Assembly (NCBI GenBank): GCA_021613535.1
Contig: CP075497.1
Location: 12,958,001 to 13,022,000 of the forward strand
DNA: 64,000 nucleotides
Reading direction: 5' to 3'
DNA from: Adineta vaga
Taxonomy: Eukaryota; Animalia; Rotifera
In this document: positions 2,832 through 58,465 of the stretch, piece after piece
Position numbering within the stretch: position 1 is the stretch's first letter
Layout: each line of letters starts with the position of its first letter
Made by a program: the position numbers and the translations under genes
The notes under the pieces: generated by a model
The model's database searches: none
Seen by the model: the letters and a program-made list of their open reading frames with translations, nothing else
Told to the model about the DNA's origin: nothing

Positions 2832-3002
2832 ATCTGTACGAATACGAAAAAACTTTTACACCTTTTTTTTGCTATTGTATAAAATTTTCTTCTTATATTT
2901 ATTCAAAAAGTTATAGTACACTCTAACGTTGGTATATAAAAATCTTGAGAACATGAACTGAATTTTCAAAAATATATTTGAAGTAAAATATGAAAGACTA
3001 AT

Positions 3003-4350
3003 CTAATGTTTTGTATTTTCAATAAGTTTATCTTCAATATCAAAGAAAACTAATTTTGTTCGATGAATACATATATCAGTTAGAAAATTGATTTGATCTA
3101 TATCTAACATTATATGATGTCTATCAGTTTCAGATGGAATAGTGATTATGAAAATGCACATTGTAATAATTAAAGTCAATTTTTTAAGGATTCGTTCAAG
3201 TATGATCAATAAGAAAGGAATATTTGTATGTTCATTAACGTTATAAATTATTAATTTCTGTTTGAGATCATTTAAAATAACCTTTTATGAAAATCTCCAC
3301 AAAATAGACCATTGAAAATGTTCTGTTTCATAATTCATCTAAAGAAGAGTTTTCGGTTTTTTTCTTATGTTTTTCCGAGTAATCAGATTGTTGATATGAT
3401 GAAAATTTCTCAATTCTATTTTGTAAATAAGAAATTATTTTCAGCTAATTTTAAAGCATTTTTATTATAACATTCATATTCTGCATAAACATCACCAACA
3501 TATTTAACACAAAAACGACGCATTATCGAAAAAAGAACTTCTTGTTCGTTAGACATTGCAGAAAAGTTTGAAATGTCAAGAAACATTTTAGAATGAAACT
3601 CATATCAATTTTAGGATTTAAGTGTAGTCGAACCAAACATACTAAGTAATATACATTTGGTTGTCGAGATCGACAGATATTTCTTTATTGTTTCACTTCA
3701 ATATGACTCATATATTGACCTCGATATAAACAACTTGAACAAATGGCATTATCTTTTTAAGTTTTAAATTAACTGAATAATTTTGAAAATGTTTATCTAA
3801 TTCTTTAGATACATGTTGAATAAATGATACCATCGAATATCATATAATGATGCTTTTAAAAATGATTTTTTATTCTTAAATCTCCATTGATTGATAAAAT
3901 AAATGTAAATACATTCAATTTTAATCATATTTATAATTTTATCTTGATGAATTTTTTTCTAACGAATCCGATATGATCAAAAATATTTTCATTGTTGTAT
4001 ATTCATTTGAAGATTATTAAGTAAATGTTGAGAATCATGATTGATTATCAATTAATATGAGACAATAATTATCGAAAATATTTTCTCCTTTCAAATTTTC
4101 ATTAATTTCACGTATTTCATTTTCAATAACATCAAAACTTTCTTTCATTCGAATGAATATCGTTAAAATGAAAACATTTTTATATTTGTCTATCATTGTT
4201 TTTCTTATATCTAATTTATTTATATTCAAATTAACAATTGTTTCTTTTAATATAATATAGTCTGAAATCTTCTCATCATCATCAACTTTAAATTTCTATT
4301 TTATTGAATCAAACATAGAGATAATAATCAAATTCTTAACATAGACATTC
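3003..4350 (-). pseudogene. Degraded coding fragments of unknown family
   Basis: Short Ile/Leu/Asn-rich ORFs (3003-3209, 4035-4229) with coding-like sequence between them broken by stops and frameshifts. Confidence 0.25.
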
Positions 4351-16031: not shown

Positions 16032-17930
16032 ATGGCTGATGAAATATATTCAATTGCTAGTCTTTATATCGATGAACGATATTTAAATGAACTTTGTCAA
16101 TATGTAGAACAAAGTTCAATCATTGAATTGAAAAATCTATTGGATAAATTGATTGATTCATTCGAATATTTGACGAGTCTGATTTGGCAGAATGAAAATC
16201 AATTGAATTTATTGATGTTAGCATGTTTTCATGGAAATCAAAATGTTGTCGAATTTCTTTTAAATTATGGTTATGGAAAAGAACAAATTGAACAACGAGG
16301 CAATATGATTTTTAATAATGGACAACAAATTCAAGGTGCTAATGCTCTTTATTGTGCATGTTTTCAAAGTCATTTTCATATTGCACAATTATTAATTGAA
16401 TTTGATCAAAAAATGGTTAATGAAGATACAAATGATTATCCATCATATCCATTATTATTACAAGCAACGATGAAAAATCGTTTGGATATTGTTCATTTTC
16501 TTCTTGAGAATCAATATTCTGATGTTAATGAAACTCGATCATTTGGTAGAAATCAACGTACAGCTTTGATGTGTGCAGCCTCTTTCAATCATCCTATCAT
16601 TGCTGAATACTTGATTAATCATGGCGCTAATGTGCATCGTATCAGTTCGAGAACGGGTGTACAAAATACAGCATTGAAATGTGCAATAGTAAATCAATCA
16701 TTGGAAGTATTCTCTTTGCTTTGGAAAGCAAATGCTATTTCAAAATTAGAAAATCGATTTGTTCTTACATTGATTATAAACCATTATTCGTATAATATTA
16801 TGAATTTCCTTTTAGAACAATCATTTTTTACACCTGATGAACTTGAATTTAGTGTCATTTCTGAACTTTCCAATTTTTCACAATTTGAATCAAGAGAAAA
16901 GTTTTTACCATTCTTAGAAATCTCTTTAAAACAACGACAATTAATGGGACTATCAAAATTATTGCCACCACCAAGATCAATGTATGATTATCATCAAGAA
17001 TGTCAAACAGTCGATGAATTTAAATCAATTATAAATGATCGCGAACGAATTCATCTGGAACTTTTATTGATTAAGGAACGTCTTTATTCAACTAAACAAC
17101 GTCAAACTTTAAAAAATGCATTAAAACAGTATATTCAACGATTAATCTCAACAGGAAAACTAGAACAAACATTCGATGCTTGTTTACATTTTGTTGAAAT
17201 CGATCAAGGTGAATCGACTATATATTTATTAGTTTGGATTTTATGTCGAATGATTTCTATTCAACAACGAATATCGGTCAATCATTTTTTACAAGCTGCT
17301 TCTTTTGCACTTCAACCATGTTATAATCAATCTCGTGAAACAGATGTGAATAATGCATTATTCTTAGTAATTATTGCGAGTAAAATTCTTGAACAACAAA
17401 ATATCAATATCGATGAACGAAAATCAATTTATCAATGGATTAATAATCTTTGTCGATTGAGACCAACGATTACAACTGGTGATACATTATTACATTTATG
17501 TGTCGATAGTACAACATCGAATAATCTTACTTTTCGTTCATCTGATACAACACCTCACATTCAATTTCCTAATCGATCTGCTTTAAAATTACTTCTAATC
17601 TATGGAAGTTCGTGGTTAGATATTAATGCACGAAATGAATTAGGTAATACACCTCTTCATAGTGCTTGTCAAAACATAATCGATCCAACGATTATCGAAA
17701 TTCTTATCAATGTTGGATGTCATATCGATTGTATTAATAAACAAAATAAAACTCCATTGGATTATTTAACGAATCCAAATATTATTCGAATTCTTCAGCC
17801 AATTTCTAAACCATCAGAATTAAAATGTTTATGTGCTCGTTTGATCGTTGAAACATATTCAAATATTGATTCTTTGCAATTGATCAATTCTTCTCTACAT
17901 AAATTTATTGCTTTACATCGTGATCGTTAA
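16032..17930 (+). CDS. Ankyrin-repeat protein, FEM-1-like (putative cullin E3 substrate adaptor), intronless
   Basis: N-terminal ankyrins (GANALYCAC, TALMCAA), PP...Y....EC.T..E segment, C-terminal ankyrins (GDTLLHL, GNTPLH) and BC/VHL-box-like ELKCLCARLI. Confidence 0.85.
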   Translation: MADEIYSIASLYIDERYLNELCQYVEQSSIIELKNLLDKLIDSFEYLTSLIWQNENQLNLLMLACFHGNQNVVEFLLNYGYGKEQIEQRGNMIFNNGQQIQGANALYCACFQSHFHIAQLLIEFDQKMVNEDTNDYPSYPLLLQATMKNRLDIVHFLLENQYSDVNETRSFGRNQRTALMCAASFNHPIIAEYLINHGANVHRISSRTGVQNTALKCAIVNQSLEVFSLLWKANAISKLENRFVLTLIINHYSYNIMNFLLEQSFFTPDELEFSVISELSNFSQFESREKFLPFLEISLKQRQLMGLSKLLPPPRSMYDYHQECQTVDEFKSIINDRERIHLELLLIKERLYSTKQRQTLKNALKQYIQRLISTGKLEQTFDACLHFVEIDQGESTIYLLVWILCRMISIQQRISVNHFLQAASFALQPCYNQSRETDVNNALFLVIIASKILEQQNINIDERKSIYQWINNLCRLRPTITTGDTLLHLCVDSTTSNNLTFRSSDTTPHIQFPNRSALKLLLIYGSSWLDINARNELGNTPLHSACQNIIDPTIIEILINVGCHIDCINKQNKTPLDYLTNPNIIRILQPISKPSELKCLCARLIVETYSNIDSLQLINSSLHKFIALHRDR

Positions 17931-21951: not shown

Positions 21952-23170
21952 TTATGATAAACAGAAATAACCGTTTTTTCTCAATGTGATAATGTGTGAA
22001 GAAAATAAAAGCGTTAGCCGTTGTTGGATAATACTATCTATACTATAGGTACGAGGCTGTCGTTTACTGAAAAAAACGTTTCCGGAGAAGAATTTATCCA
22101 ACAGAATTTGTTTTTTCAGTGAATTGTTCTCTTTATCCACCCACATTCTCAAGATTAAACTTTTCTACTTACAAAGAATTTGTTGTGTTGGTATTCGATT
22201 TTTAATTCGTAAGATCAATTGAATAACAACAGGTATAATTAATCTTAATATTAATGTTAAACTAATTCATTTTTGTAAAACATAAATCAAATTTCGTCGA
22301 GATATTTTCAAATAAGTACATAATGATGGTAAACATTCGAAATATAAACACATTCAAGTGTTGAAAAAAGAAGTGTAGTCACTGGTAAACAGCTAGTTGA
22401 CATACCTGGTATAATCCATAGAAAATCGTATTGCATATTATATGAAGAAACATTTCAACACTATTTGAAAAACCGGATTCTATTTTCTCACAACCACGAG
22501 AATCACAATAGCATCTCAATCCATTCTTTTGTTTGAACATATACGTTTCGTGTGTCATTATAGATTTACCCACTTTTACGTAATAGTTACCTGTTTGTAT
22601 TCCAGATATTAAAATAGTATTGATCAATATTTTATCTATTATTTGAACTTTAGATTTAAAACTATTTGGTGCAGTAATTTTAAATTGTACAATAACTGAA
22701 TTAATATAAGATCGGAAATCATTTTCTGAAAATACTTCTGAACTCATTATAAGTTATTTTGATAAAACAATGAAATACTCTGATTAATATTTGTTTTTGA
22801 TAAACGACAAAAAGTATAGCAATGTGATTGAAATTGAGCACTACTCATACGTCGAAAATCTTTAATCCATCGATCAGAAATAAAATCACTTAAACAAACT
22901 TGATGAAAACTTACTTCAAAGTGAAATAAATTTACCATATGGAATAGAAATACGAGAATATGAACATTTTGCATTGATAGGAAGATATTTAAATTGTTCT
23001 TTTGTTGATTGTTCGAGTAATGATAAAATAAGACCAATAATAATAAGTAAAATATAAATTCATGTACCAATTATATTCCAATGATGTTGTTGATCAGTTT
23101 CTTGTTCATTGGAATTATCTGATGGTGAGAATAAATTTAATTTGAGAAGATATTCTTTCAAAGAAGACAT
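21952..23170 (-). pseudogene. Decayed member of the repeated 2-TM Cys-rich module family
   Basis: NLF...IGT*IY (TGA at 23060-23062), FHQVCLSDF, CYC, TM2 LTLILRLIIP, then the start of a second repeat; frameshifts and deletions. Confidence 0.75.
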
Positions 23171-24631: not shown

Positions 24632-27600
24632 ATGAATCCAAAAATGATATTTCATTGGATTTATGATCAAGGAAAGAATTACAATCTTTTCATGTTGGAA
24701 GAAAATGATTATCATGATGACGAAAATGAAGTACGTGATCCAGTAATTGATCTTAAACAACAAAAATATGCAACTTGGTTATACGTTCTTCTCCTTTTTA
24801 GTAAGTAATACAATAGTTTATCTTCTTTGTTCAATGCTCAAGTTTACCGTTGCTTTTTTAGTATCACTCTACATTTTATTCTATCTCACTTTGATGACAT
24901 CACATTCTCAAACTATTACAGTTTCTCCTATAACTTTAAATCGTTTCAAACAATTGTATTTTGATTATGCAGAAACTCTTTCTTGTCCATGTTCAACAAT
25001 CAGCGTACCACATAAGGAGTTTATATCAAATAATATCACATTTCATCCAATTTGTTCAAGTATTTTTGTTAGTAAAGAATGGATACAAGCATTATATCTA
25101 ATCAATGCAAGTGATTATGGACGTGGAGATTTTCGTGTAACAGCAAAATCTCAAGTAAGTGAATATTTTAATGTCAATAATTTTGATTTATTTTACTTTC
25201 GTATAGTTTCAACTTTTAGCTGATCTTTGTTCAATGTCTAAGGATACAGTTTCTCAAACTGAAGAAGATTTTGATAATGATGAATTCATTACTATTAATC
25301 TACTTCATCAAGAACAAGTTCAATCAGAAGTGAATGTCTCTATGAATACAATTAAAAGTAGTATATCAACACAAATGATTTCATTTCTTAATTATATCAG
25401 AGTCTATGTTCGCACAAATTTTATCGCTTCAGCTCTTAATACTAATCTAATGTTTTCAACTTACGTTCCTTACGTTCAATATCAGGTAGGTCATCATAAT
25501 CATCATCATCATCATAGTTTACACTGAATTTGAGATAAATTATAGATAACTCAATATATTATTTATCAATTACAAGCACAGTATACTCCAGATATGAGTA
25601 TTTATTCCACATCAGTAGATACGATGATGTGTGGTAGTCGAAATCCTATTACTCCTACAGGCTTCTTTCCCGAACGAAATACAACAAAAGTTTTTGAACT
25701 CGCTGGATGGGCCGATCCTGAACCAAATTCAACACTTGTCAAGGGATTTTTTACAGCATGTACATCTCTCGAAGCTCTTCTACCAAGTACACTCGACTGT
25801 TTATACAATATTAAATGTATTCATCTACTCATTAACTATTTCCCATCACTTAATCAAGTTTGTATAACTCATTATTTACTCATCATTTTCATATTCTTTT
25901 TTTCTCTCAATTCTTTAGCTCAATTTCAATTGGACTAATTCAACTTTGCCTTCAAAACAATCAAATATTACAGTTTACGATCATTTTCTTGATCTTTTCA
26001 TTGAAAATTGGTCAACAGAAGTGAATTATTCAAAATATTTCAATGAATGTGCTTCATTATCATGTTCATATATAATAACAGATCAAAGAGATTTTTCCTA
26101 TGCATTTACAATGTTCATTAGTTTATATGGTGGTCTCATTATTATACTTCGTTTGATTGCACCACTGTTAATCAAATTCTTATGGAAATTAAAACATTGT
26201 TTAATACATAGAAACGTTCACATTGGTATATGTATTAAAATTGAAAAAAGATGAGTTTATTTTAGATTTGATTTTCTATAGGTTTTCAAAATATACATCC
26301 AAAGAAATTTGTGAAATCATTGAAACGACTGAATTTATTTAAGAATATTGAAAAATTATCAGAAGAAGACATCAAACATCAACGAATGATCACTCGTGTC
26401 TATTTATTTTTATTAGCAGGTATGATTATATTGTTGTAGAATGTGAATGACGAATTATGTATATCGAAATTCATACTGCAACTTTGAAGATTTCTCAATA
26501 TTTTATTCGTTTATTATAGGTTCATTCTTAATTCTTCTTCTTTTCACTTCTCTGGAAACTGAAGTAGTTACAATAACTGAATCAAATCCATCATTAACTA
26601 CTTACAATTATTTACAAAAGTCATATTCAAACACACTTCGTTGTCCTTGTTCTATTACAACAATACCTCATGAAGAACTCCTAACATTATCACCAACTTT
26701 GCATCAAATATGTTCAAGTGATTTTATAACAGATCAATGGCTTATAATATTACAACAAGCGATTGATTATAATGCTGAAGATTGGCGAAATCGAGCGTAT
26801 TCACAATTTCAACTGTTATCAAATCTTTGTAAATTGGCTAAAAATACAATTGACAATGCTGTTCAACGTTTTCTTTTTCAATCTTTATTTGTTTCAAGTA
26901 TTCTATCACAATCTGAATTTAATACACAAATCAATACTACACTTGATCAATTTTTTCAATCTACAATTCGTTCTTTTGGTTCTCTTATTAATATAACAAG
27001 TCTTCTTACACAAGTTGATCAATTCTATATGGGAGCAAGAAAAACAGAATGGGATACTATACAAGATAATTTTTTAATACCAAATATTCCAACAAATAAT
27101 CAATCACTTCAAGTATATTTCTTTTCTCTCATATATAAATATAATGATGATCTAACTTTTTAGATAATTTTTAATTCATTTGGAACTCGTTATGTGAATT
27201 TATCATCAGTCAATTGTATTTGTGCTACCAATTCAGCTTGTCAAACTCCAGTTGCTATCTATGAAATGGATAATATTTGGAATACTCGCATATATGCATA
27301 CATCATTTACATTGTGCCAGGTGCCATTGGAAGTTGTTCAACATTTAGTTCTCTTATGTTTTCACAACTATTGTGTTTTTATTCAAATATTGATTGTTTT
27401 CCAATTCTAATGAACTATGTAAAAGCTAGTTATTATCAAAATGTTGAAAATCCAGTTTGGTTCGATCCACGTCCTCTTGTTTATAATGCAAAATTAAGTC
27501 GTTTTCCTCCAAATACATCAGTTTCAAGAATAGTCGAACAAATTATGATTGAACAATGGAATCCATCCTATTCATATGAACGTTTTTATGATTTATGTGC

Positions 27601-30600
27601 ACCAAACTATTGTACATATTCTGAAAAGATGCGTGCACGATCAATTATTGAAGTTATTATAACATTTATATCAATGATTGGTGGTTTAGCTTTTGCTCTA
27701 ATTTTAATCACACCACTATTCATTACATTTATTAGTAGTTTCTTACAAATATGTATTAAGAGACGACAACAACAATTAGGTACGTTATTACTTATCTTAT
27801 GTAGAATAAATTAATAACTTATCATTTCTTTTCCTTTTTGTTGCATTTACAGTTCATCAAGGCAACGTCAATCAGTGGAAGACAACTGCTCAAAATTTCA
27901 TCTCAATGGGTTATATCACTTTAATCAACGTAAATATATTTTCAACACGTGATTTTGGAAGTAATATCAATCGAAATACTGCTAAACATCTTGGTACATG
28001 GGCAACACGTCTTCATATTATTCTATTTATTACTGGTCTTATTGTTCTTACTTTTTACACCATATTTGTACCTCAAACTAACACAAAAACATTCAATAAA
28101 CCATCATACAATTTATATAATTCACTCAAACAAGAATATGGAGATCAATTGAAATGTTCATGTTCAGTAATTGCATCAAAATATAATCAATTCACTCAAA
28201 TTGAACCAATATTTCATCAAATTTGTACAAGTTCATTTATATCAGATCAATGGCGAACTGATGTTACAAGTCGTCTCGATGGTAATCTTTCAAGTTATGG
28301 TCAAAGAGATTATCGTCGTTTTCTTTCGGCTCATTTACAATATCTTCAAGGATTATGTCAAATTTCTATTCAATCTATTGACAATTCAATTGAACAATTT
28401 CTTACTTCATTATTTGTCACAACTGAATTGTTGTCAAATGATGATTTTCAAACACGTCTCAATTTCTTAATTCAACAGAAGAAATCAGCTGCATCAATTG
28501 CATTTACTCATCCTTTCTTTTTAATGCGAAGTATCAATCATGAAAATGCTTATATATCAACATATGGAACAAATTATGAATATATTTCTTCTTGGTTTTG
28601 GACTACAACTTATTTTCCTTATGTTCCTAACAAAGCAGTTATCTATGACAATAATTGTTCATGTGGAATGTATTCAAATTGTATTACTCAAGCTAATTTC
28701 ATTGAACAAAATGCTTCTATAATGGTTGAAGTAAAAGGTTTGAAAATGGGTTGTACACCAAGTGAATCTTTGCGTTTATCGACTCTCGAATGTTTTTATG
28801 ATCAATCATGTATTAATTTGATCAAATTATATTCGAATTCAATCAATTCATATAACTTCTCCATTCCGCTTTCAATAACAATGAGTCGATATTCAATGAA
28901 TACTATTGTAGCTGAACTTATGAATGAACTATTTGTTGAACAATGGGTATCATCAATTAATTATTCATCATATTATGAACAATGCTTACCATTGTCATGC
29001 ACTTATACTTACAATGAACAATTCAATATACTTTATTTAGTAACAGTGTTAATTGGTCTTCAAGGTGGTTTGACAATTGTTCTTCGATGGATTTGTCCAA
29101 AATTAGTTCGAATCATAGCAAAATTACATGAAACTCGAAAGAAACGAACGAATAATGTTCAACCTAATTCATTTGTTCAATCGAAAAATGCTCAAATCAG
29201 TAGCATTAGAATTAATAACTCTGATTATAATATGGCAACAGTACCGAATGTTACATCCGAGTACGATTTGATTTTCTTTTATGAGTAATATGTGATTATT
29301 GTTGTTTTAGACGAGTAACAGAATTATTAGGTCAACGACGTTTGAAAATTGTTTTCATATGTTTAGTATTGTTAATGATTGTAACAGGCCTTATTGTGTT
29401 TTCAATTTATACGATTCAACAAAGAAAGAATAATGCTATTTCAACAAGTATAAGATATTTTTCTTGTCAATATTTTCAAATACTAAATTCAATCTTTTGT
29501 TTTTAGCATTTACATCAACTATGACAGTCAATGTTACAACAACTACAATAATTATGAGTACAACAACAGCAATTACTACAACAACAGCACACGGTAAATA
29601 TATGAAATTCGTAGAGAATGTTTTCTTAAGATAGATAATAAATACAATTTTCATTTATTTAGTATCCATTTGTCAGTTGAAATTTCAATTAACAATCAAT
29701 TATAGAACTGGTTCTACTGCTGGTCTCAAGTCACCTGTCACTGCTGATTTCAATGGTGATCATTTAATAGACATTGCATTCTTTAATTATTATACAAGTA
29801 GTATTCATGTTCTGATTGGTGATGGAAAAGGAAATTATACTACAGAAGTGAAAACATTAATAGGAACATTTATTACTTGGTATTTTAGTATGGTTGTTGC
29901 TGATTTTAATAATGACAAATTACTTGATATTGCATTAACTAGTGAGAATAGAGCGTTTATCTACATGGTATTTGGAAATGGGAATGGAACATTCAGATCA
30001 TTAACAACATTCTATATGGGAAATACTACAAATCTTAGAGGAATTGTTGCTTATGACTTTAATGGTGATAATAATACAGATATTGCTGTTTCTTCTCCTG
30101 GTTTTAATATTATCATTGTATTATTGGGTGATGGAAATGGAGCGTTTCCTAACAAAACAACATATTATGCTGGACGAAATGCTAATCCATCATCAGTTGA
30201 TCTGGGAGATTTTAATAATGATGGTTTTATGGACATTTATTACAATAATATTGTGATCAGAGGTATCGGTGTTTTATTGGGTAGGGGTGATGGAACCTTT
30301 CAAGATCAAAAACTATCGTTCGCTGGTGGTTATTATCAACCATCTTATATTGCTACAGGTGATTTTAATGGAGATCAACGAGCAGATGTTGCAGTTTCTT
30401 ATAGTGGTGGGAACAGAATCGGAGTGCTTCTAGGCTATGGTAATGGAACTATGGGCCCAGTACAAAAATTTACCACTGGAAATAAAACATATTATACGAG
30501 AATTACTGCAAGTGATTTTAATAATGATGGAATTACAGATATTGTTGTCAATCCTACTTCAAGATCTGTTGTATATGTTTTAGTGAGCTATGGTAATGGA

Positions 30601-30765
30601 AAGTTTGATACACAGATGATATTTTCTACTGGATTAAGTGGAAGTTACAGTTGGGTGGTTCCTGCTGACTTTAATAACGATGGTTGCCAAGATATACTTG
30701 CTACAGATGATCAGAGTGGTGCCGTATTTGTTCTACTAAACACTTGTCAGTGTCAAACAAATTGA
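24632..30765 (+). CDS. ~1813 aa membrane protein: three 2-TM Cys-rich modules + 7th TM + Thr stalk + FG-GAP/VCBS beta-propeller
   Basis: 12 exons splice in frame with GT-AG: 24632-24800, 24862-25154, 25207-25485, 25546-25857, 25919-26225, 26282-26419, 26520-27112, 27164-27779, 27853-29260, 29311-29447, 29507-29593, 29663-30765. Seven DFN.D...D repeats at the C-terminus. Confidence 0.85.
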
Positions 30766-31118
30766 GTCACTGCAAGGAATACATAATATATATTGAAAAC
30801 AGGTTTCAACTAGACAAACAAATCATGTGATTATTCTAATAGATTTTAATCATTCTTGATGTTTTTACGTATGTTGTAGTAAATCTTCACGCTTTTTTGT
30901 GTAATGCTTCATTTGATATTGTATTAATATTTTTTATATCACTTTCTCTGCTTTATGAATCTTCAAATAAAATATTAAATTAAAGTCAATATCGTTTAGA
31001 GTTCATGAACAAAGATTTAATCTTTATTTCATTTAAGCATTTAACTTATGTGAGGTCGGAAATAAGGAAGATATGTCAAGTAAACAAATCCGACCAATTT
31101 GCAATACTTTTATTCCTC

Positions 31119-31240
31119 GGGTGGGTGATTGTGGGTGTGGGTGTTTGTGAATCTTCTTTACTCTGCACTCATTCATCCACCTTGGGAAAGGTGAATGTGA
31201 ATGTTTTTTTTTCCTCTTACCGTCACACTTACCCACAACC
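31119..31240. repeat. Telomere-like inverted-repeat hairpins (two adjacent)
   Basis: GGTGGGTGATTGTGGGTGTGGGTG...CACTCATTCATCCACC and GGTGAATGTG...CACACTTACCCAC. Confidence 0.6.
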
Positions 31241-31675
31241 ATATCAGACCCTTTAGACAATTTTTTCTGTTCGAGGAAAATCGATACCTGTGATAACTTG
31301 AGCCAAGTAAATTAATTTCACAAACATGATGTATCGGTTCTTAAATCGGCAAGCGTCGTCTCTGTGTCAATATCGATGCACGCCTAGTTGGATTTTCCGC
31401 GAAATTTCATAAATCATGAAATAACTGTGCTCAAGGATATTTTCGTGATGAGTGACGTGATAAACAAATATCTCGTTTTACTTTATAACAGTTATCTTTT
31501 CAAAGAATCCTGACTTTTTTGTTGCGAAGTAAATGGAGTTGTCATTGTGAGTTATCATTGTATACACAACTTTATATGCCTATGAATGTTGATATTATTT
31601 GATAAGAACACAAAATTTATCACAACAATATAAAAGAAAAGTATTAAATAAAAGACATATCAGTTCTTTGTTAAG

Positions 31676-32604
31676 ATGCATCCACAACAGTATCCACAGC
31701 AGCCTTATGCATCCGAGCCTTACGATCATAGATCGTATCCACAGAAGCCGTACCCACAGCAACCTTACGCACAAGCGTCCTACCCTCAACATGGTACGCC
31801 TTATCAATTACAATTAGTAGCAACACGACCAAGAGCGGTGAACGACATTCTTCCTGGTTTTGTTCCTGGTCTATTGGGCGGTTTGCAATTGGTGCTCTGG
31901 CTGGCTATAGTGGGTCTCGAAGCAGGAGGTTTATACTACGATCCATTGCGCGGTACCGCCTATGCAGGTTTCTGGTGCTCTATTATATTCTTTGACACTT
32001 GGATATCAATGTTCTGCTACCGTGAGTATTTCTTAGTTAATTCGAAATACATATCTCATTTCTGTTTCATGTATTAGTATGTTGCGGTAAGTCAAATGGA
32101 TGTGCAATCTATCTCCTTGTTCAAAATATAATTAATATGATTTGTTCTGTTATACTGATGGCGTTTACTGCTTATTTCGTCCAGAATCCTTGTTCATGTT
32201 ACTTTAGTACTCTCTGTGTAACAATCGATTGGATCAGCGTGACCACCGATATTCTCGGTTTTGGTGGATGCGCATCGAAGCTACCATTACTCAAGGGTCT
32301 TCTTGCCTGTGCTATAATAATGTTTCTCTCTAGTATCGCTTACATCATTGCCTATATTGGTATCAGTATTTGGCTATGTGCGAAAAGGAAGTCAAGCGTT
32401 GCAAACACAGAAGTAAAGTTTCAAGGACATTCACAGGTGGTTCAAATAGGACAACCACAACCATATGTTCCAATTCATGGCCAACAATATGGAGATCAAA
32501 TGAAAGATTATCATGATAGATCGAATCCTGATAATCGTTTCTCATCACCGACACCTCATATTGGGCAATATCCAGTTGACCAGGCGAACGATGGACGCTT
32601 TTAA
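31676..32604 (+). CDS. Tetraspan membrane protein (MS4A/CD20-like) with PQQPY-repeat N-terminus, 2 exons
   Basis: Intron 32022-32077 in frame. LGGLQ in TM1, YAGFWCSIIF in TM2, four TMs, Cys-rich loop. Confidence 0.75.
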
Positions 32605-32747
32605 CGTACAAATTTTTGAACTGAAACATATATTTGAATTACGAAAAGTGGTTTTTTTATAATTCGTATCATACTATATCGATGAATAAAAACATAAAAA
32701 GAAATGCTTTACCTTTAAAGTGTGTGTATGTATGTATGTTTAGAAAC

Positions 32748-32795
32748 TGGGTGTGGGTGTGGTTTTGCATATATAGAAGAGAGATCCACATCCGC
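32748..32795. repeat. Telomere-like inverted-repeat hairpin element
   Basis: TGTGGGTGTGG...CCACATCCGCA pairs fully if G-T is allowed; lies between convergent genes. Confidence 0.65.
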
Positions 32796-32871
32796 AATAA
32801 TTTTTCCGAGCAAAGTTATGATAAGCAAAATAAAGAGTGACAATATCAAAAACTTACGAAAGTATGAATGC

Positions 32872-35800
32872 TTACGAATCGGTCAATGGTACCACATGTC
32901 GTCGACGAAATGATCGAAGTATTCTAATGAACATAGATACCACTATTTTCAAAATACTTGTAAGGCCTCCAAAGGCTCCAACAACAATTTTAAATACTAC
33001 GAGCCAATCATTCTTACCGATATATGTGTAAGTGCATGTCATAGGATAACATTCTTGATAATAGTTTTCGTGAGATGTGATTTTTATCCATTGATCGACC
33101 ATAAGTTGAGATATAATATGTATGAGAGTAGTGTCTGGTTTGTATTGAATCTATCTATTTCGATCGAGTGCAACAGTATTTAGAGGAGTAGATAAATTCA
33201 TAATACGACGAAGATCATCAATGCATGATTGATTATAGAAGCAAACAAGATTTGATTGAAGAAGAGCTTCGACAATAAAGCAACCTTTTAGAATGCCTGG
33301 TACAGTAAATAATTTTTCCGTGATGTGGTGAGTATTATATTTTTCTTTATCGTAAATACTGGATTCTTCTACGCACAAAGGTGTTTTTTTACAAGAACAA
33401 CTTGATTGTGATGAGTCATCGGTAATATTTCGAAATTGAAATTTTAAAAACATATTATGTTCATTTGTAGAATCCAAGGACGGTAATAAATTAGTCCTAC
33501 GACTTGAAAATAGAATATTGCTTTGAATGATATCACGCATTATTTGCATTGAACGTAAGACACTATTTGTCATCGAAGTGATAAAAGATTCTATCAAATT
33601 TTGAGATTGTTTTTTGAACAAGTCTAGTGTCAATACATGACTTGTAACGAAAGGTCTACTATTGAAACGAACTAATTCATCATTAATTATTGTATGTGAT
33701 AAATTACAAAAGAATCCTAAGGCTCGAAACCAACTGACTCCTCTTACGCGAAAATCTTCACTATTGATACTTGTCGTTTCTGGTACGCTTTGTACCATGA
33801 ACCAAAACCAATCATATGTAACATACACACTTTGACATATTTCATGAAAACGATCCACTTTCAATTCAATGAATTTATCGTAACGATTAGAAATATTTGT
33901 GCATGGACATGAAAGTGTTTGATGAAATTGAAAATCTAATTGTAAGTATTTCTCATATGAAGGTTTTTCTATATGAATTATTTTTAAAATGGATATTTGT
34001 GATGTGTATATAAAGAATCCACATAATGATATAAGAAGAAGAATAATGTAGACTCGTGTTGCGATAATATTAGTTCGAATTCGATATATATTATCCTCGT
34101 TTGATTGTGCTGTTGAATAAAATATAGTAAATTTTCGTGACCATTCTTTTGCATTATTCCATAATTGATGAATTTTTTCCATATGCGATAGATCTGATGA
34201 AAAGAAGAAAAATCAAATCAACATAGTTTAGGTCAAAAGTATCATGTAAATATATAAGTGCTCTCATATCAAGTGGACATAAGTGAAAACGCTGTTGCAT
34301 TTTAGGATTTTAGTGAAAAATCAAACTATTACCTTCATTGATTCTTTGCTCTTGAATCTGGAATCGTCTTCGCAGTCTTGTAATGATTAGAGGAATTAAA
34401 AACTTGAGGATTATTGTTAATCCACCAACTAGTCCTATGAAACCAGTGATAATATCAAAGATACTATATTGATCCTCATAGAAAAAGTTACACAATGAAG
34501 GTTTACATTGATTATAAAAACTTTCATGTGATGATGTATATGTCCAATTCTCGATCATCATTTGATTAAAAATATTACTAATGGAAGAAGTAACATTAAA
34601 TTGACTATCCAAATTTGAATTGAGTGATGTGACATTAAATAACATCGTCGATTTAAGACGACGATGAACATCATCAATGCAACTTTGATTATAATAACAT
34701 TGTAGTGTCGATTGAAGTGTAGCCTCACTCATATAGCATCCCACGCGAAGTCCAGGAATATGATATTGTAATGATCCTAGATATTCTTGTGACGAAATAG
34801 AACATGCAGTTGTGAACTGACATGAACAACGTCGTCCGCCATATAGATGAATCAGTGTACGTAACCTCAAAGTTGCATTGACACTACTTACATCAAAACT
34901 CGACTCGGAAAGTGTAGCACTAAATAATGCATTACTGTAAATCATCTGATTTATCATAAATAAAGTTCGAATAAAATTCCTCGTGGTTGAAATAATGAAA
35001 AGATTAATCAATGATCGAGTTTGTTCGTTGAAAAAGTCTATATGAAGAACTTTATTGGCAATAAATTGTGTAGCACTAAATCTAGCACGATCAGTAATCA
35101 CACTTGAGTTAGCTGAACGACACCAAGTTGCAATGAACCGAAAAAGTGATTCTCCTGTTAGTTGAGGAACACTTAGAGAAGTTTTGATGAGATATAAAAA
35201 GTAAGTATCTGTTACAAAATCACTTTCACACACTTGATGAAAACGTATTGAAACATTCATAAATCGATCATATCGAATACCAACATTCTCACATAAACAT
35301 ATTAACGATTGTGGATAATTTTTGTAAAGTTCTGTATATTCAATGTATGTAGGTGATTGAATATCGACTACTTTTAAAATGGATGCTTGTGAAGTATAAA
35401 TAACATATATAATAAATGAAATAACAAGAGCAACAATATACACACGAGTCGAAATGATTTCTGTTCGTTCTTGAAATTCATCGACTGGTTGATCAGAACT
35501 TAGCAAATTTAGTGTACGAAATAATTCTTTGATTTTTCTCCATAAATTATGAATACGATTTCTGAGTAACATATCTAATATATCAAATAAAAATAAATTA
35601 GATTACATCATATTTTCCTTCGAATCAATATCTAATAGAAATTTAGCTTATAGAGATAATAAAGAACTCACGTGGTCGATTGATTTGTTGTTCAGGAGTC
35701 TTTGGTCGACGAATTGAACGAATGAAATCAATAATTCGATATACAATGATTTCTAAAATAATCGAAAGTCCCTTGATAATACCAATAATAATTATAATTA

Positions 35801-36959
35801 TTGCAAGCCAACTATTTTTGTCAGCATACGTATAAGTACATATAATGGGATGACATTGATTATAATAGTTTATGTATAATGTTCGATTTGTTAATTGTTC
35901 AATCATAAGCTGTGAAACAATATGAATAAGAGTTGTATTCGGTGCATATTGACTAGATACATCTGTAGTAAGTGCTTTAGCATTCATGATCAAAGACGAA
36001 TTGATAGCATAATGAAGATAATCAATACAGGCTTGATTATAAAAACAAGCCAGATTTGATTGAAGAAGAGCTTCAACAATAAAGCAACCTCCCAGAATAC
36101 CTGGTATATTAAATAAACCCTCATCATCGAGGTAGGTTTTTTGGGTGCAAAGAGTCGTTGTAGAACATGAACATTTAATTGACTCAGAAAAATAATTTTT
36201 CCAATTAATATTCACTTTATATTCTGTTTGATTGTGTGAGTTAACTAGTTTGTGTACTGTAAATGCATACATAGTCGACAAACCTGTTGCAAGTCCATTA
36301 GCATATGTAACATTATGAATTGTTTGAAGTGATTGAACAAATGATGTAGTTATACTATGTAAAAACGATCGAATTGCTTCATTACTCTCTTGTAAAATGA
36401 TATCATTTGATAGAAGTTTACCAGTAATTAATTGATTAGCATAGAAATCAGTTAGACCATCCATGAATATCTTTTTTGTTAAATTACAAAACATAGCAAG
36501 AGCTTGAAAAGAATGAGAACCTGTAGGTAAAGAATAGAATACGGGTTTCTTTATACGAGTTGCTGAATCAATATAATCTTGCCAAGCTAATGTTACAAAT
36601 ATACTATCACATATTGAATGAAATGAAACATTAATATAAATAAATTGATTAAAATAAACAGAAAGAGTCGTACATGGACAAGATAATGTTTTTGAATAAA
36701 TTTTATATAAATTTAAATATTGATCATATGTTGGATGTTCAATATCGATAGACTTGTTGATTTCTACTTGGGATAAATAAATCGTATAGATAATAATAGA
36801 TGTAATGAGCAAAATAATATATACACGAGTTGAAAGAATTTGTGTATAAATATCATATGGATTTGTTAATGGATTTCGTACAGAATGAAATAAATTAAAA
36901 TTTATTACCAATTTTTTGCATTGATTATACAATGCAAGAAGACGCTGTTTAAACGGCAT
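32872..36959 (-). CDS. ~1280 aa protein of three tandem 2-TM Cys-rich modules, one exon per module; in-frame TAG in module 3
   Basis: Exons 36959-35672, 35574-34333, 34193-32872 joined by phase-1 introns. TAG at 33151-33153 with homologous sequence continuing in frame (R*IQYKPDTTLIHIISQLM). Confidence 0.8.
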
Positions 36960-39378: not shown

Positions 39379-40296
39379 ATGAATTCTACACTTTTGACAG
39401 TCATGTCATTAACATTGATATACAATGATTCACCATCAATATATACTGAATTATGGTTTATTCCTCTTGATATTCTAGCAATTATAAGTATGATTTTCGT
39501 TATTATTCTTTCGATTGTTTATTTATTTATTATTATCTCGGATAAAACATGTCATACGATTTCAATGATGTTAATTAGCAATACGTGTTTCATTGCATTT
39601 CTAGCTGCTTGTAGTATACTTAGTATGTCGATATTTACACTTCAAAATGATTTAAAACAAATTGAATATCAAGATTCATTTTGTATTTTTCGAGGTTATA
39701 CTTCTTATGTTGTATGTACATTATTTAATTTTTCATTTGTTCTACAAGCTTTATATAGATATGTTACTGTTGTTTATCCAACTTATTTACTTTGGCAATC
39801 AGTAAAATTTCAAATTTTTCTTATTATTTTTATATGGATATTTAGTATTGTATTTCCTTTTCCTTTTACATTTACAAATGAAATAACGTATAATGTTGAC
39901 AATCAAATTTGTCAATTACCTTTTGAATTTTCTTGGCCTATTCTTTATATTGTACATTGTGCTTATTTAATACCTGTTTTGATAATAATGTTTACTTATT
40001 TTAAGTTAGTTCAATATGTTCGTCGTATGAGTAAACGTATTACACCTGTAAATACTTTACTTCGTGCACAAAGAGAATTAAAAATGGTTCAACGTACAGT
40101 TATTATTATAACAATTTTAGTTATACTTTGTTTTCCTTATGCATTATTTATTGGAATATCATTCTTTACTCCACCACCAAAATATCATTTTCGAATTGCT
40201 TATATATTTGCTGATCTATCAATAGTATCAGTAATGTTAGTTTTATGTCAATTTACAGATGTACTTAAAGAATTTTTTATGAAAAGAATAAAATGA
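39379..40296 (+). CDS. Divergent 7TM GPCR, intronless
   Basis: Seven TMs; FCIFRGY, QALYRY (DRY equivalent), QICQ in ECL2, CFPY in TM6. Confidence 0.85.
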   Translation: MNSTLLTVMSLTLIYNDSPSIYTELWFIPLDILAIISMIFVIILSIVYLFIIISDKTCHTISMMLISNTCFIAFLAACSILSMSIFTLQNDLKQIEYQDSFCIFRGYTSYVVCTLFNFSFVLQALYRYVTVVYPTYLLWQSVKFQIFLIIFIWIFSIVFPFPFTFTNEITYNVDNQICQLPFEFSWPILYIVHCAYLIPVLIIMFTYFKLVQYVRRMSKRITPVNTLLRAQRELKMVQRTVIIITILVILCFPYALFIGISFFTPPPKYHFRIAYIFADLSIVSVMLVLCQFTDVLKEFFMKRIK

Positions 40297-53362: not shown

Positions 53363-55803
53363 TTAATTGTGTAAAAGTACAAATATGTTTTCTTTCCAGG
53401 TATCCAGAGCAATGATATCAACTTTGTTGTCACCATTTAGATCAACAACTACCAATATATCTTGCTCTCCACCAACGTAATACACGGTGTGCAGCAGATA
53501 TGTATCGTTACCGGAGTTAAAAAATACTTCGATAACGGTTTCGTCGTCATTACCAACTATTATATCGAGTAGATTATCGCCATTTACATCAGCTACAGCT
53601 AATGATGTCGGAAAAAAAACAGTCGAGTAGATGGCGTGATGAAGGAAAGTCCCGTTGCCTAAGTTCAATAAAATTTCTATAGGGTAACCCTCATCATAAC
53701 CGTCATCGCTCGCCAGAACAATATCAGGTGCTTTGTCGCCGTTGAGATCTATTACTACTAATGATTCTGTGTAATTAACGGAGTAATTAGTAGGAGAAAG
53801 AAAAGTACCATTGCCTAAGTTCAATAAAATGTCAACGTTGCCGTGATCCTTGTTAACATTACTATCGGTTGCAATAATAATATCAGGTGCACCATCGTTA
53901 TTAAGATCTTTTATTTCTATTAACGTTGGATCGCTAACAGGATAGGAAATAGGAGAGAGAAATGTGCCATTACCCAGATTCAATAAAATGCCAATTCTGT
54001 TGTCATACTCGAATGCAATAATAATATCAGGTGCAGTATCGTTATTAAGATCCATTAGTACCAACGATGTTGGTTTATTATTAAGAGAATAATTAGTTGA
54101 GGAAATAAAAGTACCGTTGCCTATGTTCAATAAAATGTTGACGTGTTTATCATAGTCGCTTGCAATAACAATATCAGGTGCTTTGTCATCATTGAGATCC
54201 TTTACTGCTAATAACGTTGAACTGATTTCGAGATGATAATTAGTAGGAGAAAGAAAAGTACCATTGCCTAAGTTCAAGAAAATGTCAACGTTGCCGTGAC
54301 CCTTGTTAACATTACTATCGGTTGCAATAATAATATCAGGTGCACCATCGTTATTAAGATCCATTACTACCAACGATCTTGGTTCCTTCTGAAGATGATA
54401 AGCAGCGAAAGAAGGAAAGGTACCATCTTTTTTATTGAGAAAAACGTAGATTCGATACGGAGATTCGCCCGCGACAACAATATCAGGTCTTTTGTCTCCA
54501 TTCAGATCAATTACTGTCAAAAAATATAATTGACTTTCAGTTTTATAAACAACTGAATGAAGAAATATGAGACTGCGTAGCTGAAGACATTGAACTTCTT
54601 TCGTCTCTAAAATAAAATAAATATTATTATTTATGACAGAACATCTATTATTACTTCAGTATTTTACATATCAGTGTTAATTCTACTTTGAAAAAGAGAA
54701 GAATAAAATAAATATAGGAAAAATCATTTTTACTCGAAATATTACAATTTGAAATAGATTATTCTATAGGACATGAGAAACGTTTACAATGTCATGTAAC
54801 TTACTTGGTAAAAGATTCAATAAAAGTGACGCTAAAATCGTTCGTTTATTTCTAATAAATTTCACATAAGATAATGTTCGATTACCAACATCATTGTCAT
54901 TGAATGTTAATGTAATATTCGTATTTGAACCAGAAAAGATCACATTTTTATCTAACATCCACATACAAGTAGCATCCAATGGACATTTAATCGATACAGT
55001 ATATACGTTCGAAATTGAACCAACAGTAAATACAGTTGATCCACTGATTATTCCTTTTGTAAAATCTGAAGAAACAAAATATTTAATAGTTAATTCATTT
55101 TAAAATATTTACTATTTCTTACCAATCGATTTTCCTATCGATGAAGGTGAAAAATGAAAGAAAAGATTATGTAAATCAAAATTTGAATTTGATTGTAAAT
55201 TCAATAGACATTTTGCATAAGAAAATTCGAATCCATTGTATAAGATATTTATAAGATGTCCAAGATCATGAGGATATGAATTATATTGTATTGGATTACC
55301 AAAATTATCAACTATGATATTATCATATTGATCAAAGAAACTAATTTGTATATTATTAATTAATTTAAAAGATGTTGATTCTCCAATTAATATTCTATCA
55401 TTACAATAAGACATTATATCCGGACTAAATCGAACTTCATATAGATTTCCTTCTAATCGATTATCAACTATAGTATGTGATATATCTGCGTATGATACAG
55501 CATCAGGAGGATATGTATTTTCCCATAAACTTCTCGGATTATCTAAATATATAATAGAGAAAAGAAAAAAAGAAGAATGAGAATCATTATTAGTTTATTA
55601 CTGATGAAATTATCATCACCATTTGATAATGGAGAAAAATCAAGAAGATTTGTTTCCAATTCATCACCATAAACAGTAACAATCTGATAAATGATAAATA
55701 TGATAAATAAATATTTCATTGGCATAATTCTTACTGAATAAATTGATAGAAAAATCAACAAACTAAGAAATACCAAAGCCATATGGCTAAAACAAGACGA
55801 CAT
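53363..55803 (-). CDS. Secreted or membrane protein: unknown N-terminal domain + FG-GAP/VCBS beta-propeller, 4 exons
   Basis: Exons 55803-55602, 55542-55123, 55065-54805, 54606-53363 splice in frame (phase 1). Eight D[LV]N.D..[PLV]DI repeats; hydrophobic N-terminus. Confidence 0.8.
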
Positions 55804-56488: not shown

Positions 56489-58465
56489 ATGGTATCATCT
56501 ATTGTTTTACCAATATATTCTCTTGTGTGGATTGATGCTGCTGTTCATTTGGATGAGATTTGTTACGTTCAGCAACAATTGCGTTCTACTTGTAATCATG
56601 TGAAATTATTTGAAAATGATGATGAATGTAAAATGTACATTCAACAATCGAAAGATAATGAAATTCTATTGATTATTGGTGAACAATCTGGATCTATTCT
56701 TATTCCTCTTATTCATTCATTGAGACCAATCAATTCGATATATATCTATGGCACAAATTTAAATAAACGTTTAGAATGGGCACGAAAATTTATCAAAGTT
56801 CCAACAGTTATTAGAAATGTAGATGAACTAATCGAAAAATTTCAAAAAGATCAAGAAAAACGAGTAAGATTTGCTCATGAACCTTTACCAGTGAGTATAT
56901 TTAATTTGAATCATAATGAAGAACGTTCATCAACAAATATCAACGGTGGTTTTCTTCATTTTCAATTATTTATCGATGGTCTACTTCATTGTCAATATAA
57001 TCAGTCAGATAGAAATGCATTTTTCGATCTATGTGAAAAAGAATATGTAAACAATGACACACAATTGTCTACACTTCAACAATTCAAAGACTCTTATGTT
57101 CCAGAAAAAGCTCTCTATTGGTATACACGAGATATATTTATCTATCGAATACTTAATAAAGCTTTACGAGTCCAAAACACACATATTTTATTTCAATTTC
57201 GATTTTTTATTCAAGATATGTATATACAACTGAAAAAATTACAACATCAACAAGATCAAATACCAATTCGTGTTTATCGAGGTCAACTATTGTCAAAACA
57301 AGAATTGGATGTTTTAAAAACATCTAAAGGACAATTAATATCAATGAATTCATTTCTATCGACAACTCTCGATCGACAAATGTCTCTTTTCTTTGTTTCA
57401 TCTAAAGATGATGATCTTTGTCGTGTTTTATTCGAAATCAACATTGATCCTCAAGTATCTTCTATATCAAAGCCATTTGCTAACATTAGTTCACAAAGTC
57501 ATTTTGCAGATGAACAAGAAATTCTCTTTATGATTGCGTCAACATTTCAAATGATTGATATTAGTCAAGAAAATGAACTTACTATCATTAAAATGAATTT
57601 ATATAATGAAAATTATGGTCGCAATGTGAAACTTCTTTTTGAACATATGCAAAAAGAAATTGGAATAGATAATGAATGTTTATCACTTGGTCATATATTG
57701 CGAAGGGCAGGAATGTATGATAAAGCTGAAGAATTTTATAATCGAAAATTAAATGAATTAGGAAATGATCATCCATTGATCGCTGATCTGTATGGTTCAA
57801 TAGGTTTAGTAAGAAAAGCAAAAGGAGATATAGAAATTAGTTCTCAATGGTTCAATAAAGCTTTTGAAATGTACACATGTATGGGAGATAATCGTGGAAT
57901 TGCAACTTGTTTACAGGATTTAGGTGATATTGAACGAATGAAAGGAAAATTTCATGAAGCAACTAAAAATCAGCATCAAGCATTGCATATATTTAAAACA
58001 TTGTTAGGAAATCAAAATGAGTCAGTTGCTAATTGTTTGAATAATTTAGGTGTTAATCATTTTCAACAAGAGCAGTTTACTCAAGCGATTGAATGTTATA
58101 TGAATGCATTGAATATTCGAAAAACAATTTTACCACACATCCATCCTGATATTGCACGATCATTAAATAATATTGGTAATGTTTATTTTTCAAGCAATAA
58201 ATATGATCAAGCTCTTCACTATTTCAGACAAGCATTAGATATCTTTGAAATATCGTTACCATCTGAACATCCATCTATTGCACAAACTTATTACAATATG
58301 GGTTTAACATATTTAAAAAATAGCGATTATCAACGATCGTTAATCTTTGTCAATCGAGCAGTTTCTATTTATCAAAATACACTTCCATCAGATCATATAG
58401 AAATTAAGCGTTGTATCAGTACTATAGATTATATCAAACAAAAATATTCTCAAATAGAAAAATAA
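56489..58465 (+). CDS. ADP-ribosyltransferase (ARTC-type R-S-E) + TPR protein, intronless
   Basis: ALYWYT, ILNKALR, VYRGQ, FLSTT, DEQEILF, then kinesin-light-chain-type TPRs (HPDIARSLNNIG). Confidence 0.9.
   Translation: MVSSIVLPIYSLVWIDAAVHLDEICYVQQQLRSTCNHVKLFENDDECKMYIQQSKDNEILLIIGEQSGSILIPLIHSLRPINSIYIYGTNLNKRLEWARKFIKVPTVIRNVDELIEKFQKDQEKRVRFAHEPLPVSIFNLNHNEERSSTNINGGFLHFQLFIDGLLHCQYNQSDRNAFFDLCEKEYVNNDTQLSTLQQFKDSYVPEKALYWYTRDIFIYRILNKALRVQNTHILFQFRFFIQDMYIQLKKLQHQQDQIPIRVYRGQLLSKQELDVLKTSKGQLISMNSFLSTTLDRQMSLFFVSSKDDDLCRVLFEINIDPQVSSISKPFANISSQSHFADEQEILFMIASTFQMIDISQENELTIIKMNLYNENYGRNVKLLFEHMQKEIGIDNECLSLGHILRRAGMYDKAEEFYNRKLNELGNDHPLIADLYGSIGLVRKAKGDIEISSQWFNKAFEMYTCMGDNRGIATCLQDLGDIERMKGKFHEATKNQHQALHIFKTLLGNQNESVANCLNNLGVNHFQQEQFTQAIECYMNALNIRKTILPHIHPDIARSLNNIGNVYFSSNKYDQALHYFRQALDIFEISLPSEHPSIAQTYYNMGLTYLKNSDYQRSLIFVNRAVSIYQNTLPSDHIEIKRCISTIDYIKQKYSQIEK

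Follow-up and report, generated by a model that had tools for sequence, protein, structure and literature searches.

The window analyzed here, a stretch of 64,000 nucleotides of the Adineta vaga genome (contig CP075497.1, positions 12,958,001 to 13,022,000 of the forward strand), carries two genes, one on each strand, that code for three tandem copies of the same module with two transmembrane (TM) segments and a large glycosylated loop. They are members of an unnamed and very large bdelloid-rotifer family of polytopic surface glycoproteins; our overall reading, in which the three modules of a chain would close into one body, has a probability of about 0.5. A preliminary description of the same sequence had proposed a single-chain, pseudo-trimeric ion channel made of DEG/ENaC/P2X-like modules. 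Its observation is confirmed and its interpretation is partly supported: "exactly three on one chain" is well supported, the "pseudo-trimer" is reasonable to infer, and both "ion channel" and "DEG/ENaC/P2X-like" are conjecture.

Two genes with three modules each

The window was searched with a profile made from alignment A1 (31 single-module sequences), run on all the stop-free segments of the six reading frames. Six complete modules were found, three on the plus and three on the minus strand, so that each of the two genes holds three in tandem as had been claimed (Table 1). A module has about 420 amino acids and is made up of a cytosolic segment (with a Trp-containing stretch and the motifs N-L-F and T-R-x-Y), a first TM segment (TM1), a loop of ca. 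310 amino acids, a second TM segment (TM2) and a short cytosolic linker. The loop contains 12 conserved Cys columns and many N-glycosylation sites (sequons), and there are only two hydrophobic stretches per module. For statistics we used 126 related modules, i.e., the three positions of 42 three-module proteins, in which the 12 Cys columns are conserved at 88 to 100%; six disulfides per loop may be expected from them. Sequons occur in the loop at 2.04 per 100 amino acids (1.30 when shuffled) and in the cytosolic parts at 0.33 (0.91 when shuffled), and both TM segments have basic residues at their inner ends. This enrichment outside, the depletion inside and the basic inner ends indicate that the two ends of the module are cytosolic and the loop is external. 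Thus, at the level of sequence, each chain is predicted to have six TM segments and three ectodomains, with both ends inside the cell. The former portrayal of two-TM modules with a glycosylated, disulfide-rich loop is borne out by these figures.

The most characteristic motif is that of TM2, G/S-x-x-G-G-L followed by a basic residue and a Pro (conserved columns G/S382, G385, G386, L387, L391 and R/K392). Before TM1, the columns with a share of at least 0.8 are N18, F20, T39 and R40. Within the window, TM2 has G-G-L in five modules and K-G-L in one, just as first noticed. The N-terminal motif of the four aligned modules is N-L-F (twice), N-I-F and N-L-L (once each), that of a fifth is T-I-F, and that of plus-strand module 1 (NYNLF) was taken from the exon peptide. 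T-R-x-Y/H, C-x-C, H-x-x-C-x-S-x-F and the C-terminal C-P-x-x-C-x-Y are also present in the window modules. Besides the K-G-L, the only other exception among the six is a first module without the mid-loop Cys cluster: in plus-strand module 1, the C-x-C...C stretch does not align to the profile and the exon peptide has a single Cys there. Hence, the loop Cys motifs listed beforehand are generally found, although this cluster is not in that module. The first modules of the subfamily with an FG-GAP domain show the same deviation in 8 of 13 cases. Single modules matched their relatives down to an E value of 6e-124 which, together with the conservation of the Cys columns, takes the similarity far beyond chance.

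Table 1. Features located in the window, with positions counted from its first nucleotide
Feature	Position	Strand	Remarks
KH-domain ORF	1499-2335	+	Domain scan
Ankyrin-repeat ORF	16032-17930	+	Domain scan
Partial seventh module	22198-22932	-	tblastn pieces in three frames; profile positions ca. 100-408
Plus-strand gene	24632..30765	+	12 exons, no in-frame stop; collinear with P0132
Module 1, 5 exons	24632..26225	+	Profile matches; begins at ATG; NYNLF, and TWLY before TM1
Inter-module intron	26226..26281	+	56 nt, phase 1, GTATAT...CTATAG
Module 2, 3 exons	26282..27779	+	Profile matches; no ATG before the NLF motif
Inter-module intron	27780..27852	+	73 nt, phase 1, GTACGT...TTTACAG
Module 3, 1 exon	27853..29260	+	Profile 434 bits; 50% identity to P0132 module 3
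Seventh hydrophobic segment, exon	29311..29447	+	After a 50-nt phase-2 intron
Thr-rich stalk, exon	29507..29593	+	Exon-by-exon frame check
FG-GAP beta-propeller, exon	29663..30765	+	Pfam FG-GAP_3 E=1.8e-52, FG-GAP E=6.5e-28
Two ORFs (133 and 155 aa) between the genes	31676-32604	+	Pro/Gln/Tyr-rich start, several hydrophobic stretches, no Pfam match
Minus-strand gene	32872..36959	-	3 exons, one module each; 3852 nt = 1283 codons + stop
Module 3	32872..34193	-	Two stop-free pieces, collinear with profile 3-322 and 326-407
Inter-module intron	34194..34332	-	139 nt, phase 1, GTAATA...TTCATCAG
Module 2	34333..35574	-	Profile 458 bits; source of the E=6e-124 relative search
Inter-module intron	35575..35671	-	97 nt, phase 1, GTGAGT...TATATTAG
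Module 1	35672..36959	-	Profile 444 bits; TM2 = K-G-L
Rhodopsin-type 7TM receptor ORF	39379-40296	+	Domain scan
Second FG-GAP propeller ORF	53363-54520	-	FG-GAP_3 E=2.6e-57; no module nearby
ADP-ribosyltransferase (NAD:arginine) + TPR ORF	56489-58465	+	Domain scan
Further TPR ORF	59907-61409		Domain scan
Further TPR ORF	62316-63155		Domain scan

The window is AT-rich eukaryotic DNA (GC content of 0.25 to 0.37), and the frames of the gene models were checked exon by exon, with single open reading frames (ORFs), single exons or A1 as inputs for the searches. The plus-strand gene has 11 GT-AG introns of 50 to 100 nt and 5442 coding nucleotides (1813 codons plus the stop). Its three modules reach only to 29260, so that the span assigned to it beforehand holds for the modules up to that point and the rest, 29261-30765, codes for something else, namely one more TM segment (the seventh) followed by a Thr-rich stalk and an FG-GAP propeller. 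An Adineta ricciae model (P0132, 1749 amino acids) is collinear with the whole gene by tblastn, from residue 1 at 24632 to the end of FG-GAP at 30753, and shows the same TM segment and Thr-rich linker. The plus-strand modules map 1-1, 2-2 and 3-3 onto P0132 and similar proteins at ca. 50% identity, and among the 10 nearest labeled modules, 9 or 10 were first modules for each piece of module 1 and 9 or 10 were second modules for module 2. Neither module 2 nor module 3 has a start codon where the module begins; in the latter, the ORF has its first ATG only downstream of the conserved Trp-containing stretch at the N terminus.

The minus-strand gene also codes for three modules and its top matches are collinear 1-2-3 with relatives, but they are weaker (31 to 35% identity). 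A single in-frame stop, on which the preliminary description was silent, interrupts its module 3. It may result from decay into a pseudogene, from allelic variation or from an error in the sequence. All four inter-module junctions of the two genes are canonical GT-AG introns of phase 1 that keep the frame, which agrees with what had been said of them, and they are at the same place, 28 to 31 residues past G-G-L. There is another pair of phase-1 introns inside TM1, at 24801-24861 and 26420-26519, located at the same spot of plus-strand modules 1 and 2 (five residues and a split codon past T-x-x-Y) and absent from plus-strand module 3 and from all the minus-strand modules. This suggests that the TM1-internal intron predates the triplication.

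The family profile matched 4204 representative proteins (at 50% identity) at an E value of ≤1e-3, 3482 at ≤1e-10 and 1920 at ≤1e-30, which makes the three-module family one of the largest in bdelloid rotifers. All the matches with an organism name (15 of 49 in one search, for example) were from bdelloids, specifically Adineta vaga, A. ricciae, A. steineri, Rotaria sp. Silwood1, Rotaria sp. Silwood2, R. socialis, Philodina roseola and Didymodactylos carnosus; the orders checked in the taxonomy were Adinetida and Philodinida. In the databases its members are labeled "uncharacterized" or "unnamed protein product," although one three-module protein of Philodina roseola (P0046, ARX11414.1) was named "telomere-associated protein" by its depositor. 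We found no description of the family in the literature searched, outside of which were the supplementary tables of bdelloid genome papers, where it might be listed as an orthogroup.

The best 150 of the 4204 matches were analyzed for module number. It should be noted that the ranking score sums over modules, and thus, proteins with more modules would rank first. The maximum was 2.93 module equivalents per protein; 68 of the 150 had between 2.6 and 3.05, and 42 had three full modules, typically in 1200 to 1330 amino acids. Most of these 42 proteins are little more than the three modules: the N-terminal overhang is ≤20 amino acids in 38, and 27 end within 23 amino acids of the last module, while 12 have an extra 425 to 503 amino acids at the C terminus. 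A Met near the start of the module was found for module 1 in 36 of them, for module 2 in 11 and for module 3 in 10. Scanning metagenome contigs with a pattern, we also recovered 79 related loci, or 52 groups when those with ≥90% identity are taken together. None of them has an array of more than three modules. A tight array of three was present in 23 groups, and in 10 all three modules are in a single stop-free segment, so that in these relatives they belong to one chain. Among the arrays with at least 700 nt free at both sides, there were three modules in 16 groups and one module in 4; allowing for gaps of up to 2.5 kb, these figures became 17 and 1 (L008), as three of the 4 turned into three-module arrays. 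Two of these three are L029 and L049, whose widely spaced modules are collinear with modules 1-2-3 of the three-module proteins P0089 and P0053, respectively. With this agreement between genes, proteins and loci, the single-chain architecture of three modules seems highly probable. As an annotation rule, "one gene = three modules" would correct many split or truncated gene models.

The three positions have long been separate. Comparing the 126 modules of the 42 three-module proteins, we found that the closest one from a different protein had the same position in 107 cases, and that the closest one of all came from a different protein in 110. This positional orthology indicates that the triplication predates most of the spread of the family, with one lineage per position. 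The highest identity between modules of the same protein has a median of 0.30, and the triplication is therefore old in most members. Paralogues have diverged to 25 to 35% identity on a fixed Cys scaffold, and still all three positions share the same TM2 G-G-L and cytosolic motifs, with the G-G pair retained in 32 to 40 of the 42 proteins at each of them. Five of the 42 have modules that are 46 to 67% identical to each other, and the count is still three. In locus L006, where this identity is 51 to 67%, the two junctions (ca. 2985-3045 and 4275-4335, including the 57-nt introns) are identical over the ca. 150 nt displayed at each, which points to conversion or concerted evolution, or else to renewed duplication inside one gene.

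A closed body or independent ectodomains

A second component appears repeatedly beside the three modules. Among the 150 representatives, 24 have an FG-GAP domain, 23 at the C terminus and 1 at the N terminus, and Pfam confirmed the propeller in four of five long models tested. In the plus-strand gene, the FG-GAP_3 match reaches 176.2 bits (curated cut-off, 26.9) over seven repeat stretches. Its seventh TM segment would leave the propeller outside the cell, which fits with its many sequons. There are also free-standing type II genes of the same design (own Met, TM, Thr-rich stretch and FG-GAP) beside relatives: one ends 140 to 160 nt upstream of the three-module gene in L031 and L054, and another is head to head with it in L011/L012 and L032. 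In Adineta steineri, four models of ca. 800 to 824 amino acids (P0223, P0235, P0239 and P0242) have a unit like the third module and, after it, NHL repeats preceded by a TM segment and a Thr-rich stretch. They begin at an internal Met of the module and are therefore probably truncated from a three-module gene with an NHL propeller. From the gene fusion and the gene neighborhood, it would seem that the propeller and the three-module body work together. For the plus-strand gene itself, we consider the fusion of the FG-GAP part to the three-module core slightly better than an even bet. This recurrent link provides a handle on how bdelloids may sense their surroundings.

The sequences lead us to propose that the three units would form a single closed body of pseudo-threefold symmetry, i.e., a covalent heterotrimer in which the TM2 helices pack against each other by their small-residue face. 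This proposal is based on the number of modules, which does not rise above three, on the separate orthologues of each position and, to a lesser degree, on the small-residue face itself; a number that does not grow across thousands of diverged copies suggests a closed structure rather than an open array. The partner of this body would be a beta-propeller with a type II membrane anchor, of the FG-GAP kind in the window and of the NHL kind in some relatives, either fused through the seventh TM segment or encoded next door. Considering the diversified glycosylated ectodomains, the size of the family and the propeller partner, the body would most likely act at the cell surface as a diversified receptor or sensor of external cues. 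We regard closure into a pseudo-trimer as an evenly balanced proposition. If the modules do close into one body, this would be, to our knowledge, the first natural fused trimer of two-TM subunits with large ectodomains, diversified by position, and a threefold counterpart of the four-domain sodium and calcium channels.

The strongest competitor, to which we would give clearly lower though still appreciable odds, is that the three hairpin-anchored ectodomains are independent, with no closed symmetry, and form a recognition or adhesion receptor with a CD36-like unit topology that has three units simply by descent. The TM segments do not show a pore-like polar pattern, the divergence of the paralogues on a fixed Cys scaffold is like that of receptor families, and the propellers with which they associate bind ligands. 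Moreover, the triplication is old enough (median identity of 0.30) for inheritance alone to give three. However, open-ended repeat arrays usually gain and lose units, and nothing above three modules was found in the 150 proteins and 79 loci; nor would independent units explain easily why G-G-L and the cytosolic motifs are kept at all three positions, or why the five proteins with modules 46 to 67% identical have still three of them. Even in the reading of a receptor without a pore, the modules define a new domain family.

The closed pseudo-trimer has its own difficulties, and the following observations weigh against it or against the overall reading of which it is part. In TM2, the small-residue face is weak (reached by 88 of 2000 permutations) and there is no helical periodicity of conservation (1991 of 2000 permutations reach it), and no conserved acidic or other typical selectivity residue was seen in TM1 or TM2. 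The number three may persist by descent alone, with the family growing through whole-gene duplication, and the ceiling in module number rests on the best 150 of 4204 matches and on 79 loci. Two full modules with little else were found in 21 of the 150 proteins. Hence, the fixed count of three claimed at the outset holds in that no protein or locus has four or more, and is weakened by these two-module models. By nearest neighbor, 11 of the 21 look like adjacent pairs (1-2 or 2-3) of a three-module design, P0100 is 1+3, and the rest are ambiguous. The two modules of P0100 correspond to the first and third ones of P0044, with matches of 87 to 89% (both proteins are from Adineta ricciae; the longest contig listed for either has 258,723 nt), and the middle one could be either skipped in the model or truly deleted. 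Together with P0107 and P0150, P0100 is an unflagged NCBI model on a long contig (3 of the 10 two-module sources looked up). At locus L008, only one module was found, flanked by 889 and 824 nt of free sequence. As for the propeller, there are models of the same cluster with and without it (P0050/P0201 and P0058/P0226), and an ATG in the tail of the module-3 exon makes the fusion uncertain in the plus-strand gene. Lastly, the minus-strand gene, with its in-frame stop, is possibly dead.

A central ion pore is possible, although it is the least supported step, and nothing in the TM segments demands it. We consider an ion channel unlikely. Still less probable is the most elaborate version, in which a single-chain heterotrimer would have a new disulfide-rich ectodomain fold, a central gated pore and the tethered or neighboring propeller as ligand sensor; if true, bdelloids would be sensing their environment with ligand-gated surface channels or receptors of a new class, expanded into thousands of diverged copies.

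Known families and remaining explanations

The possibility that the modules, at least those of the minus strand, are three separate tandem genes with their own ATG and stop, perhaps co-transcribed, is very slim. It would account for the module ORFs of the minus strand, which have an ATG 1 to 5 codons from the acceptor and a stop 12 to 14 codons past the donor, and for the many single-module proteins delivered by ORF callers (40 matches of 250 to 675 amino acids). Nevertheless, the minus-strand junctions are phase-1 GT-AG introns placed as in the plus-strand gene and in L006 (57 nt in the latter), modules 2 and 3 of the plus strand lack a start codon of their own, and the ten locus groups with three modules in one open frame leave no room for separate genes there. 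The single-module proteins seem to be fragments of larger genes. P0016 (471 amino acids) shares 99.8% identity with the first of the ORFs in L006, a three-module locus, and the 33 full-length single-module proteins adjoin first, second and third modules (15, 10 and 8, respectively) without forming a clade of their own. Because the introns at the junctions are short and of phase 1, a gene of three modules can come out of an ORF caller as "proteins" with one, two or three of them. A class of single-module genes was largely rejected on these grounds, with L008 as the exception.

Equally improbable is that the family is a very distant but true member of DEG/ENaC/ASIC or P2X, with three subunits fused in one chain. 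DEG/ENaC/ASIC and P2X channels are trimers; the subunit of the former also has two TM segments, the ends inside, a Cys-rich N-glycosylated loop and a Gly-rich TM2, and that of P2X shares the unit topology, the trimer logic and the disulfide-rich loop. There is even a beta-like alternation of Thr and Ile immediately after TM1 in the rotifer modules. However, the units of the rotifer protein are on one chain, have diverged by position (vs DEG/ENaC/ASIC) and have their own motifs (N-L-F, T-R-x-Y, 12 Cys and G-G-L). DEG/ENaC/ASIC channels are recognized by a His-Gly before TM1 and a Gly-Ala-Ser in TM2; His-Gly was not among the conserved pre-TM1 columns (share of at least 0.8; columns 20 to 47 were inspected for each residue) and no G-A-S-like motif was seen in the TM2 columns, in agreement with the absence of both noted initially. 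In Pfam, which has models for these channels, four of the five window module ORFs scanned matched no family at E≤1, no family was common to the 31 members scanned at E≤0.1, and the family profile matched none of the 177,635 distinct PDB sequences at E≤10. Membership in either family thus fails at the sequence level, and the likeness is one of design; the claim of DEG/ENaC/P2X affinity does not extend beyond topology and the number three. By contrast, the suggestion of a new family stands, since by these comparisons the three-module proteins are new at the sequence level, with neither a Pfam name nor a PDB sequence match. A few weak matches were rejected. The fifth window ORF hit a Transposase-associated domain (E=0.022) and CodY (E=0.1), and six one-off matches appeared among the 31 members, all far below the curated cut-offs. 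Two single-sequence PDB matches, 8q6o_R ("downstream neighbor of son homolog," E=2.8e-4, 23.5 bits) and a second one at E=0.26, were considered chance as the profile did not reproduce them.

Other known proteins resemble parts of the design. The nearest example of the proposed principle is the mitochondrial carrier (SLC25), in which three tandem homologous two-TM repeats on one chain close into a pseudo-threefold body of six helices. The design is all that is shared: the repeats of the carrier have ca. 100 amino acids and no large outer domain, they are in a different membrane and presumably have a different fold, and there is no Pfam match. Fusion of subunits into one chain followed by divergence of the positions is found in four-domain Nav/Cav, two-pore K2P and TPC channels, a pattern like that of the rotifer modules (107 of 126), but their unit is 6-TM or a 2-TM P-loop, their symmetry is four or two and there is no homology. 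Type II FG-GAP proteins and integrin alpha-type propellers are comparable to the C-terminal end of the plus-strand gene, where a TM anchor and a Thr-rich stalk carry an FG-GAP propeller of seven repeats, with the difference that the rotifer propeller is possibly joined to a six-TM core of three modules and is of the NHL type in some relatives. Finally, CD36 and the class B scavenger receptors are not channels; their outer domain of ca. 400 amino acids is glycosylated and disulfide-bonded and lies between two TM segments, and their cytosolic ends are short. Their unit topology is a model for a reading of the rotifer modules without a pore, although CD36-type proteins have one unit per chain and the rotifer modules have no Pfam match.

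The least probable explanation is that these genes belong to a telomere-associated mobile element, either as its cargo or as structural genes, an idea that finds some encouragement in the name given to P0046, in the very large size of the family and in the bdelloid giant telomeric retroelements, which are described as carrying ORFs with transmembrane domains and trapping host genes between copies (PMC6431247; PMC5408684), but it is at odds with the lack of reverse-transcriptase or transposase domains both in the 10 largest ORFs that the window has besides the modules and in the 10 largest neighbor ORFs of related loci, with paralogues that are deeply diverged and have conserved intron positions, and with the size of the TM-bearing retroelement ORF, 220 to 230 amino acids (PMC5408684), vs the 420 of a module.

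Neighboring genes

The window also contains a partial seventh module, head to head with the plus-strand gene and ca. 1.7 kb upstream of it. Its N-terminal part and TM1 are missing, and it is probably the decayed relic of a former copy. The second FG-GAP ORF, at the other side of the module genes, is presumably a free-standing member of the propeller family. Between the two genes, the pair of small ORFs may code for a small multi-pass membrane protein with one intron. The remaining ORFs with recognizable domains (Table 1) give the window the look of a cluster of expanded host gene families.

The pair formed by ADP-ribosyltransferase and TPR domains was also found near the three-module gene of L067 (16815-19019). 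The neighbors of the relatives are either common genes or of a type usual in bdelloids, and code for TPR/ADP-ribosyltransferase, fn3, a reversibly glycosylated polypeptide, a D-Ala-D-Ala ligase with SET and a ribonucleotide reductase. In L026 (14546-16261) and L028 (6404-8215), there is a D-Ala-D-Ala ligase fused to SET, and a reversibly glycosylated polypeptide of the plant type; non-animal genes of such kind are known from bdelloid genomes.

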